A stretch of DNA of 64,000 nucleotides from Piromyces finnis finn (GCA_002104945.1 MCFH01000021.1:496001-560000), one strand, 5' to 3'; counted from the stretch's first letter, positions 1-4,874 are shown. Translations and numbers: made by a program. Notes: a model not told the origin generated them from the letters alone.

Positions 1-2363
1 TCATCGTTATTCCTTTTTTCTTCGTTATTTTTTTCCTCTTCTTTTTCATCATTCATTGGAATAAAACTTCTATTCAGAGGAAATGTAAAATTACTTTCTA
101 GTAAAGCTTCACTTCTATGATTTCTTAACGGATTTAATGAATTAGCAGAATCTTCTAGATTAGGAAAAGCTTTTAAATTTTCATTATCATCCCCAACTTT
201 ATAAAATTTATCAAAAATATTTTCATCATCTTCTTCACTATCTGTATTATCACTTAAAAGGTCTACTGCTTTACTATTAGTAGTTCTTTTATATGTGGAA
301 GATGATGTGTATTTTTGTTCATTCCCTAAACGGTTTTTATTTAATGTATCTTCAAAATTTTCAGATGTATTATTTAAAAGTTCCTCTAAATTGGTTTTTT
401 TTCTATTTTCATCATCATCCTTCTATTATCATTTTTATAGGTAAAAATTTAATTTAAAAGAAATATATAAATTTAAATTAAAGTTATAAATAATAAAATA
501 TTTTTATTTCTTTAATTTATTATTATATATTGTTATATATTAATTATCATTTACATTTTCCAGTTTAAGTGACCATCCATTATCATCATTTTTAATTAAA
601 ATATATTCATTATTTCTTTCAGAAGCAATATTTTTTGACAAACCATTAAAAAGAGTTCCTTCACGATTAAATTGATGCAACGCCTCAGTTAATTTATTAC
701 GATAAATAGCACCTTTAATTTGTAATCTCGAAAAATCTAATGCAGAGTATATTAATAGTAAATAATAAATCATAGAATGATAAATAGTTGAATTAAAGAC
801 ATTTTATTATTACTTTTTTAATTATGATGATATTAAAAAAAATTGAAAGGATTACTAATTATTATGAATATTTCATAAAAAGGATATAGATGCGGCTTCT
901 AACATATTCTCAATACGTTCATAGGATCCTTGACGACTTTTATTTTTCATTTCATATACAATTTTATGTTGTACTTCTACTGGAAGTGTCTGAAAAAATT
1001 TAGATTCCAATACTTCATTGATATCCATATCGTAGCGAATTAAATTACTTAATTCATCTTTACTTGCTAAACGGTAATCGTCCATGCTTTAAATAAATTA
1101 TTATTATTATTATTATTATAGGGAATATAAATAAAAATTAAAGATAATGTTATATGAGAATAAGATTATGAATTAAAATTTAAATATTAATATATACAAT
1201 ATTAAAAATAATTCAAATACTACTATTATAAAATATAAAATATTAACATATTTTCCGGTTTTGGGGGTAAAACATATTCATCTTTTTTTGTTCTATCTTC
1301 ATAATTTGAAAGTTTAACTGCTTTTATAATTTCATCATTGATTTCTTTCTGAGAAAAAGAAGCATTTGAAATTGTATTTCCATTTTCTAATAAATATAGT
1401 AATTTTTATATTAATTCAATATTAATATAAAAAAAAAAAAAAAAATAATAAAAATATAAAAATAAAACATTTATTTTTATAATTAATACTAATATTCACC
1501 ATCTTTATTTCCTGTAGTGCTATTTGCTTGAATAGCGTTTAGGGTATTTAAATGAATTTGAGCAGCCAAAATTTTTTTTGCTGTACGTTGTACACTTTCT
1601 TGTTTTTTTATTCTTCGTTTTCTTCTTGAAGACTTTTATTATATTCAATAAATATATTACAATATAGTAATATGTTAATAACAAGAAATTTAATAATTAT
1701 ATAGATAAATTATAAAATAATGACTTAATATAAATGAAAAAAAAAGAAGTAATCCATTTGGTATTTTTAAATATACATTAATAATTTATATCATTAATTT
1801 CAATATATAAAATATTATTAAAAACCATATTATTTATTTAATGGAAATAATTAAAACAACTTACAATAGTGTTGGCTTTCAAATCAGGAACACCACCATC
1901 AAATACAAACACTGGTTTTATGTTATGAAATAAAAATTTACAAATTCTTCGAAAAAAACCTAAAATATGTGCATTATTTAGAGTTTTCCCTTCTTTATCT
2001 TTCAATGCTTTTATGAATTGGTGAAGCCAAATACTCGCATGTAATATTATTAAGGAATACATTTTTTTTTTTTTTTTTTAAATTCGAAAATTTTGTTTTA
2101 ATTTTTATTAATATTTAATTAATAATTTTGGAAAAACAAAAAATAAAAATAAATAAATTTGTATAGTTAAGGAATTTAAATTTTATAATTAGATTATTCA
2201 CAATTAAGGAATAAGATTATTTAATTATTTAATGTATTTCAAATTAAGAATTAATATTATTTTCTTAAAGGATATCTACTGCAAGAACTTTATCGCTTAA
2301 TTGTTCTAGTTGAACCGGTCTGGCGGCAGGATGAAGTAATTTCCATAGTCCTTTAACACCCAT
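1..2363 (-). CDS. RAD2: XPG/Rad2 nucleotide-excision-repair endonuclease, 5' part (runs off window start). Exons 2363-2276, 2040-1865, 1632-1500, 1386-1248, 1086-888, 746-555, 422-<1
   Basis: Spliced translation MGVKGLWKLLHPAARPVQLEQLSDKVLAVD/ASIWLHQFIKA...NAHILGFFRRICKFLFHNIKPVFVFDGGVPDLK is the XPG N-domain. Later FFQTLPVEVQHKIV and SALDFSRLQI motifs follow. All intron phases are consistent by hand count. Confidence 0.95.
747..887 (-). other. AT-AC (U12-type) intron in RAD2/XPG, 141 nt, phase 0
   Basis: Donor /ATATCCTTTT at 887 and acceptor ...ATATAC/ at 747. Removal joins EAAS to SALDFSRLQI in frame. The branch site is degenerate. Confidence 0.85.
2041..2275 (-). other. AT-AC (U12-type) intron 1 of RAD2/XPG, 235 nt, phase 1
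   Basis: Donor /ATATCCTTTA, branch-like TTCCTTAAT at 2057-2049, acceptor ...TATTAC/. Removal restores the conserved LAVD-ASIW junction. Confidence 0.93.
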
Positions 2364-2862
2364 GCCGAATTTTCAAATCACAATTAAATTTACTAAGAAT
2401 TATTAATTTAATGTTTTTTTTTTTTTTTTTTTTTTTATATTAATATCATAATGACAATTAGCAGTAAACAAATTAAAATACTTTATGCTTGAATAAAAGA
2501 AAGATATATTATTAGGATTGATTTTAATAAAATTTCATTTTTGAAATGAATTTATTTTTATATAAGATTCTTTTAATTTTAAATTCTACCTTTTTTTATT
2601 CTTCTTGAAAGTTAAATTAATTCATATAATTCATATAGAAAAAAATATCATTAAATTTAATTAATATTAAAATTTAAAATTATGGATAAATTAAAATTCA
2701 ATTAAAATTCAATTAAAATTCAATTATGCTAGTAAACAATTTTATGATATAAAATTAAATATATTTAAAATTAATTGTAAAGAAAATGTTATTACTCTAA
2801 AGAATTTTTTTTTTTTTATTAAAATATTAAAATATAGATAAAATACAAATTATTTAAAAAAA

Positions 2863-4874
2863 ATGTCTTTGCAAGGACTTTTGAGAAATATTAATTTTGA
2901 AATTCAAGATAATGAACTTAATAAATTTAAGGCTATTGACCATAATATTCGACATGCCTACTATACTCAAACGATTTATATATTATATCAATTAAAACAG
3001 TTTTGGAAGATGCAAGTAATTTAAAATTAACTTAATGATTAACTTAATAGTATATTACTATATTAAATATTAGAATATTATGAAAACGTATTATTAAATA
3101 ATTTTTATATATATTCTATATTTATGAAATAAAGCAATTAAAAAGAATAGATCCAGAAATGTTTAATAAAGAATATTTAAGTATTTTTACTAATGTTAAA
3201 CAAGTAAGTCAGGCTAATTTTGACAAACCTATTCAAAAAAAGATATTAAATGATGAAGAAATTGATGATATTACAAGAAATCAGATGTTTCAACTTTTAA
3301 CACAAAAAATAAATGGTATTGATATTGATGAACATTCCTTTAATACAAAATTGATTGCAGATAAATTATTTGAAAATTTGAACAATACTGATCCAGATCA
3401 TGCATTCAAAGTCGTTTGGATGGTTATGGATACTAAAATGTCTCATAGTGGTTTACTTGCTAAAAAAATACTCGATACGTGCTTAGAATTAGGTATATAT
3501 AATTTTTATACTATAAATTATGAAATAGTTAATTATTAACAATGTAATACTTAATATTTTTAGAAATATTTAAACCCAATGAAATATACTTGTATTCTAC
3601 AAATAAAGAAATTACAGAAAAACTAAACTATCCAAGTAATATACAATTTACAGATGATAGAATGGTAATCTTTAATATTAATTTATTTAATAAGTAAAAT
3701 AAATAATAATATCGAAAACATAAATATATATCATAAAAGCAAGTACCAAAAAATGTTGATGTAGTGATAATATCAACATCTGCCCCTGTTATTAAACGAT
3801 GCTCATTTTATACCCAAAAAATTTTTGGTAGTAATAATGAAGATGTAGTGAATCGTTTACCAATGATGTTACCTATTATACCATCTGTACCTACTTTAAA
3901 GTTAAGATTTGCTTTTGGATGGCATAGAACAATAGTTCCATGGGTGGTATGAATCATATATAGTTATTAAATATATCAATATATTTTAATTCTATAACAT
4001 TCATCGTATTTATATATAATATATAAACTAGGATAATGATTATATTTTTAATAATTATTTCAAGACTAATAATTCATATGTTAGTAATTTTTAATTTTTA
4101 ATTTTTATAGATAAATATAAATAATTTGTATAAGTAATATCCTATTAATTCAATAAATTGCATATTTATATTTTTTATTAAAAAAAAAAAATTAATAAAA
4201 ATAAAATTTTAATAGATATCATGGAAACCTGAACGTATTCCTGAAGAAATGATAAATATATATTTACCATCTCATTATTCAGATAAAATATTAGTAGAAG
4301 GTGAATCAAAATATGAAAAAGCTTATTATCAATATAAAGATTTTTTAGATCAAACTTTTGAGGTATTTTTAAATTATTGTATTGGTAAGCTTGGATTAAA
4401 AAGGACTGAAGCACAAGAGTAACTATCACCAAAAATATAATTTTAAATACTTTAATACAAATAAAAATATACGTAATAATCTTATTATTTATATAAAAAA
4501 TAACAGTTATGTTGAAATTGGGCTTTTTAATCAAGTATTTAAATTAAAAATTGAAAAGAGATTTCCAACATTTAACGAAGAGTAAATATTTACATATATA
4601 TTATTATTTTTAATAAATTATAATAAGGAGTGAAAATAAAATAACCAATATATTATCAAATAATATTTAAGAGATGAAGAGTTTTCCGAATATCAACTAA
4701 GACATCATTTTAATGAGAATTATAAAAATATAATGAAAAAATTAAAACTAATGAAAAAAATTTATGTAAGCTATCTAATATAATGTTCAAATGTTTATAT
4801 CTATGTATTATTATTACTAAAATTAAATCTATCTATATATTTTTTAATTATTAAAATAATTATATTTACAGTGA
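2863..4874 (+). CDS. Multi-exon hypothetical protein divergent from RAD2. Exons 2863-3015, 3135-3492, 3564-3664, 3740-3946, 4216-4418, 4507-4581, 4672-4765; stop at 4872-4874, or at 4783 if the last intron is unspliced
   Basis: Seven coding blocks join in frame through GT-AG introns with matching phases (MSLQGLLRNI...KVVWMVMDTKMSHSG...LRFAFGWHRTIVPWVISWKPERIP...). No family recognised. Confidence 0.7.

Follow-up and report, generated by a model that had tools for sequence, protein, structure and literature searches.

A probable U12-type AT-AC intron in the Asp30 codon of a Neocallimastigomycete XPG/RAD2/ERCC5 gene

Described minor-class introns and the locus in Piromyces finnis

U12-type AT-AC introns follow the consensus /ATATCCTT ... 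TCCTTAAC ... AC, and in mammals the choice of their 3′ splice site relies on a short distance between branch and acceptor, 9–10 nt from branch to junction being the short end of the mammalian range. AT-AC introns of the U2 type carry donors that resemble the U2 consensus, unlike ATATCCTT. For the fungi considered here, Larue and Roy (2023; PMC10639083) have already reported that Piromyces finnis and Neocallimastix californiae possess minor introns and minor snRNAs. At the level of the gene, Table 3 of Sheth et al. (2006; PMC1557818) lists ERCC5 with a U12-type intron whose termini are AT-AT in the human gene and AT-AC in the mouse gene, and gives no intron number. A preliminary description of the present locus had stated that ERCC5 has minor-class splice sites, which this table bears out as far as it goes; it had also placed human ERCC5 intron 1 at c.88, a point on which the same unnumbered entry was the only literature found. 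The supplements of PMC11347168 and PMC2426677 contained nothing on the human ERCC5 intron position, and PMC6717342 and PMC5787415 contained nothing relevant to it. Among the minor snRNAs, a U6atac box of the type called the “[GU]CCGA CC variant” occurs in many lineages, and its poor pairing with the 5′ splice site was raised as a puzzle in 2008 (Dávila López et al., 2008; PMC2396436).

The window, that is, the whole 64-kb stretch of DNA analysed here, has a G+C content of about 20% all along, and the gene of interest is read on its minus strand. We regard the segment 2041–2275 with high confidence as a U12-type AT-AC intron in the gene of a Neocallimastigomycete XPG/RAD2/ERCC5 nucleotide-excision-repair nuclease. 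Measured against the U12-type AT-AC consensus, its donor is exact and its branch word is exact save for a terminal T instead of C. A short branch-to-acceptor distance, the AC end, the lack of a polypyrimidine tract and the presence of four minor snRNA genes in the genome are further features in common, whereas two additional exact branch words within the intron set it apart, as does a fungal U6atac of the CC variant, which pairs poorly with UCCUU (PMC2396436). With the minor intron of vertebrate ERCC5, known from a listing without intron number, it shares the gene family, and the hemichordate and mollusc genes have a U12-type intron of the GT-AG subtype in the Asp30 codon; the fungal gene differs in having two AT-AC introns, the second of which lies where the hemichordate has a U2-type intron. 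Larue and Roy (2023; PMC10639083) name P. finnis and reach the same conclusion on minor introns and minor snRNAs; their main text is without the XPG gene, and the present analysis documents a single intron with transcript support and orthologues. The novelty implied in the preliminary description therefore falls away: the species-level claim is published, the existing gene model is right, and the XPG intron counts as a well-documented example rather than as a discovery. It bears out, for an individual intron and on transcript evidence, that minor splicing works in an anaerobic gut-type fungus, and it adds no new principle, the residual interest being an anomaly of the branch site.

The Asp30-codon intron and its removal from the transcript

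The minus-strand ATG at 2363 opens a reading frame whose translation, MGVKGLWKLLHPAARPVQLEQLSDKVLAV, comprises 29 codons and is followed by a single G. Pfam searches, run on the exons singly, matched exon 1 to positions 1–31 of XPG_N (29.8 bits) and exon 2 to positions 33–90 (66.1 bits), and since position 32 is missing between them, the split codon, encoding Asp, corresponds to that position. Exon 2 starts with AT|GCG AGT ATT TGG and reads D-ASIWLHQF...PVFVFDGG (translation ASIWLHQFIKALKDKEGKTLNNAHILGFFRRICKFLFHNIKPVFVFDGGVPDLKANTI), and excision of 2275–2041 rebuilds G|AT, that is, Asp, after exactly 88 coding nt. The 8 nt between the proximal branch word and exon 2 are AATATTAC with the terminal AC at 2042–2041, and the 3′ end, ...AAAAAAATGTATTCCTTAATAATATTAC, is a run of A instead of a polypyrimidine tract. 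The preliminary description had placed an AT-AC intron of this extent inside the Asp30 codon, and its coordinates and account of the signals prove exact (Table 1). D30 of human XPG, the residue that the description had called the catalytic Asp, is a metal ligand and belongs to a set of seven conserved carboxylates that coordinate metal (PMC7515719). A GT-AG alternative around 2276/2040 was considered and rejected, as the sole GT (GCA|GTAGAT) joined to the nearest AG (GCGAG|) leads to a stop; by direct reading of the sequence, there is no GT-AG pair around these positions that keeps the frame.

Table 1. Features of the XPG/RAD2/ERCC5 homologue in the window
Feature	Position	Strand	Details
Exon 1, XPG/RAD2/ERCC5 homologue	2276..2363	-	88 coding nt from the ATG; stops after base 1 of the Asp30 codon
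U12-type AT-AC intron (very probable), 235 nt, phase 1	2041..2275	-	sequence; absent from transcript contigs in runs X1, X2 and X3
Minor-class 5′ splice site ATATCCTTT	2267..2275	-	sequence; same donor at the equal codon position in L009 and Basidiobolus (L010)
Putative branch-site word TTCCTTAAT	2049..2057	-	8 nt separate it from exon 2; presumed branch A at 2050 or 2051
Second exact branch-site word TTCCTTAAC in intron 1	2166..2174	-	sequence
Third exact branch-site word TTCCTTAAT in intron 1	2203..2211	-	sequence
Exon 2, 176 nt	1865..2040	-	finishes Asp30, then ASIWLHQF...PVFVFDGGVPDLKANTI
GT-AG intron after exon 2	1633-1864	-	sequence/contigs
Second AT-AC intron, 141 nt, phase 0	747..887	-	donor ATATCCTTT, terminal AC; joint 746/888

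The gene can be assigned to the XPG/RAD2/ERCC5 nucleases by its XPG_N and XPG_I domains with a long spacer between them, the N-terminal MGVxGLW and the conserved Asp30, and the best relatives of residues 1–100 of the stored gene model (P0001; 1664 aa, with PF00752 and PF00867) bear the names rad2, ERCC-5 or UVH3. The preliminary description had expected that standard predictors would mis-annotate the intron and truncate XPG, and this is not the case for the stored model, which reads ...LAVDASIWL... (SDKVLAVDASIWLHQF) and ...LEAASSALDFS... (NMLEAASSALDFSRLQIKG) and hence uses both AT-AC junctions. In L006, exon 7 (window 1–422; L006 5087–8422, minus) forms a single open frame of 1112 codons, about 17 of them past a likely GT donor. 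It consists mostly of low-complexity spacer rich in Asn, Asp and Lys, and this spacer accounts for a protein of 1664 aa, a length well above that of the XPG proteins from animals and yeast among the matches listed.

Four public runs (X1–X4) contain 23–47% of the words of window 1–4000, their status as RNA being guessed. The transcript data consist of contigs and not of reads, so that they bear on the presence of a spliced form and not on its share, on transcript starts and ends or on branch points. In each of X1, X2 and X3, which come from two studies (P1 and P2), one long contig lacks all six introns of the window, and a contig missing six consecutive introns is to be considered mRNA-derived. 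The pieces 1–422, 555–746, 888–1086, 1248–1386, 1500–1632 and 1865–2038 are present in all three without mismatches, the pieces listed for X1 and X3 extend to 2274–2400, and the joint 2038/2274 is listed for X1, X2 and X3. This joint skips 235 nt, has 127 nt on its shorter side and fits equally up to two places further on; within this ambiguity of 2 nt only the AT..AC placement (2040|2276) corresponds to a known intron class, and the joint was put there. The check across the junction that had been proposed for the intron thus turns out in its favour, 2276 and 2040 being joined in contigs of three runs from two studies within the 2-nt ambiguity, and the intron is excised exactly in mRNA-derived contigs. 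The joint 746|888 of the second AT-AC intron is unambiguous, AT..AC, and also found in X1, X2 and X3, and the remaining four introns of the XPG gene in the window are GT-AG.

Two further contig observations concern other places of the gene. A joint from 243 to 1607, skipping 1363 nt, appears in three runs with only 21 letters on its shorter side and is most likely a low-complexity mis-lay rather than a splice. Run X4 contains a contig of 207 nt (window 802–1008, depth 2.7) that runs unbroken from within intron 747–887 into exon 5 and reflects either intron retention or DNA in X4. On the plus strand, a divergent neighbour gene at 2831–3768 has GT-AG introns at 3016–3134, ~3489–3559 and ~3664–3738, according to contigs of X2 and X4.

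From the splice signals and the snRNA genes described below, we infer that the minor spliceosome removes 2041–2275, as we also infer which of the three branch-site words it would use. The U11/U12 di-snRNP would recognise the donor ATATCCTTT together with a TTCCTTAAY branch site, the U4atac/U6atac.U5 particle would join thereafter, and excision between G2276 and A2040 would rebuild the codon of the metal-binding Asp30.

Conservation of the intron positions and components of the minor spliceosome

With the long spacer exon as query, P0001 was retrieved together with a relative, L009, which lies on a metagenome contig of 8.4 kb and is 48% identical in the spacer. Both AT-AC introns occupy the same places in L009, where the donors are ATATCCTTTT and ATATCCTTAA and the acceptors AC. 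Residues 1–100 of P0001 retrieved XPG/RAD2/ERCC5/UVH3 orthologues, of which nine genomic loci were compared; a Gigaspora locus (L011) was set aside because it is a transcript contig and thus uninformative on introns. The Asp-codon intron is AT-AC and U12-type in the fungus Basidiobolus meristosporus (ATATCCTTTT...TACTTAAC...TTTAC), and GT-AG and U12-type in the hemichordate Ptychodera flava (GTATCCTTTG) and the mollusc Biomphalaria glabrata (GTATCCTTTT...GCCTTGAC). It is U2-type in the fungus Gonapodya prolifera (GTCAGT...AG) and the green alga Elliptochloris bilobata (GTGCGG...CAG), and there is none in the fungi Rhizopus, Mortierella and Rhizophlyctis or in the flowering plant Punica (pomegranate). 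L009 and Basidiobolus retain the phase-1 donor of the Asp codon, and its counterpart in Ptychodera and Biomphalaria is GTATCCTT; both position and class of the intron are conserved in other opisthokonts. As the phase-1 position in the Asp30 codon is common to distant lineages, as U12-type or U2-type intron, it must be ancient: animals share it in U12-type form and a green alga in U2-type form, in line with the preliminary description, which had proposed an ancient conserved intron. Judged from these sequences, the Asp30-codon intron is a retained ancestral intron that was kept as U12-type, converted to U2-type or lost according to lineage, and a single gene thus illustrates all three fates in clean, textbook form.

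The second AT-AC intron lies three codons ahead of DFS. Its position is occupied by an AT-AC U12-type intron in L009 and Basidiobolus and by a U2-type intron in Ptychodera, and no intron is present there in Gonapodya, Rhizopus, Mortierella and Rhizophlyctis.

For the minor snRNAs, the Rfam models were searched against the genome from which the window derives (cut-offs: U12 53, U6atac 33, U11 39, U4atac 53 bits). U12 (L001) reached 66.6 bits with the branch-site-binding GAGUAAGGA intact, and U6atac (L002 1501–1649; G000:C112:211500–211648) reached 52.1 bits, both above their cut-offs. The U11 candidate (L003) scored 38.2 bits, just below its cut-off, and is full-length with the conserved GUGCGGAAUCGAUAUCAAGAGAUUUCG stem-loop; the U4atac candidate (L004 1501–1629; G000:C90:253883–254011) scored 49.2 bits, also just below its cut-off, and is full-length. 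The true U4 was found at a separate locus with 89.9 bits, and the U4atac candidate is therefore distinct from the major U4. Its CGUCCUUAUCU is the exact 11-nt complement of AGAUAAGGACG in U6atac. We take the changes in U4atac and U6atac relative to human to be compensatory on both partners, and the same presumably holds for stem I (UGCCA/UGGCA). The U6atac box is GCCGA where human has AAGGA; for this reason a pseudogene was considered and then dropped in view of the exact U4atac complement and the known CC variant. Next to the U11 candidate, at a distance of about 550 nt, a match to a SNORD14-like C/D box snoRNA was observed (L003 2162–2325, minus), which has 52 bits, under the gathering score of 64, and 73 inserted nt that the model lacks.

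The search for minor-specific proteins covered 25K, 48K and 59K; for 65K, 35K, 31K and 20K there is no specific Pfam family. A Ubiquitin_4/SNRNP25-like domain was found with 38.5 bits, over its cut-off, and the exon upstream of it resembles, as we assume, human SNRNP25 too. A CHHC finger of the zf-U11-48K family was found with 28.1 bits, likewise over its cut-off. CHHC fingers occur in TRM13 as well, so that this finger is only suggestive of 48K and could belong to TRM13 instead. The search for PDCD7/59K gave no match anywhere and is in itself uninformative. The genome thus contains four minor snRNA genes, those of U11 and U4atac just under the Rfam cut-offs, and at least one minor-specific protein. 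The functional minor spliceosome that the preliminary description had proposed for this fungus is supported by the two snRNAs above and the two just under the cut-offs and by the U4atac–U6atac complementarity, and the protein check suggested with it yielded the SNRNP25-like domain and the U11-48K-type zinc finger, the latter possibly TRM13.

Alternative readings, branch-site words and their chance frequency

The U12-type reading has to be weighed against an AT-AC intron handled by the major spliceosome, on which minor-class motifs fell by coincidence. U2-dependent AT-AC introns do exist, as reported in Sheth et al. (2006; PMC1557818), and each motif taken singly occurs at chance frequency in such an AT-rich window. 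Yet donor, branch word, spacing and AC of 2041–2275 are all of the U12 class, the donor recurs in L009 and Basidiobolus and, in the form GTATCCTT, in two animals, the 3′ end is a run of A and lacks a polypyrimidine tract, and the genome contains minor snRNA genes, which together render the coincidence very improbable. Still further removed, and hardly conceivable, is the possibility that there is no intron at all and that the joint reflects an artefact of genome or transcript assembly or exons of different genes. It draws on the facts that the contigs are the only transcript evidence and that the RNA status of the runs was guessed; it conflicts with the same joint, free of mismatches and 127 nt long on its shorter side, in three runs of two studies, with a joined product that restores the XPG_N profile exactly, and with the same exon-intron layout in the independent metagenome contig L009 and in distant species.

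A different question arises within the U12-type reading, since the intron might branch at one of the upstream TTCCTTAAY words (2166–2174 or 2203–2211), leaving the proximal word redundant or in part-time use. Three exact TTCCTTAAY words fall within the 235 nt of intron 1, against a chance expectation of about 0.007 words, and these are three of the seven in the whole window; TTCCTTAAT has its complement in the GUAAGGA box of the U12 candidate. The excess speaks for upstream branching, and so does intron 747–887, which is without a branch-site word close to its 3′ end, the closest look-alike, AATCCTTTCAAT, lying about 95 nt upstream. The same direction is indicated by L009, whose only good words are TCCTTAAT, 56 nt from the AC of intron 2, and TACCTTAAT, about 70 nt upstream in intron 1, a degenerate word GCCTTTAAA standing beside the acceptor of the latter. 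Against it, the proximal word already lies at about the branch-to-acceptor distance known from mammals, its presumed branch A being only 9–10 nt from the junction. We consider branching at an upstream word unlikely and retain the proximal word as the putative branch site. The interiors of intron 1 from the window and from L009 gave no meaningful alignment, and the extra branch words can therefore not be called positionally conserved.

The odd number and placement of branch words matter for 3′ site choice by the minor spliceosome of these fungi. A relaxed or different branch rule may tentatively be suggested for minor splicing in Neocallimastigomycetes, with words tens of nt from the acceptor, as in intron 2 of the window and both introns of L009, or in several copies, as in intron 1; we assign this possibility a rather low probability. 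If such a rule held, selection of the 3′ site would be freed from the branch-to-acceptor distance of 10–20 nt, unlike in mammals.

Neither the donor nor the branch word alone is rarer than chance in a window of 20% G+C: ATATCCTT was seen 5 times with 6.5 expected, and TTCCTTAAY 7 times on both strands with 3.6 expected. For the remaining three ATATCCTT sites (17257, 24263 and 38044, minus), a branch-like word is absent within 600 nt. What makes the intron significant is the combination of signals, namely their order, the 8-nt spacing, the terminal AC and the exact repair of a conserved reading frame. The genome-wide scan that had been proposed along with the intron was performed with the strict pattern ATATCCTT-N(30-300)-TTCCTTAAY-N(6-14)-AC in the 56.5-Mb genome (56,455,805 bases, 232 contigs), and it supports the claim with 10 occurrences, the intron at 2041–2275 among them, compared with 2 in the reversed control.
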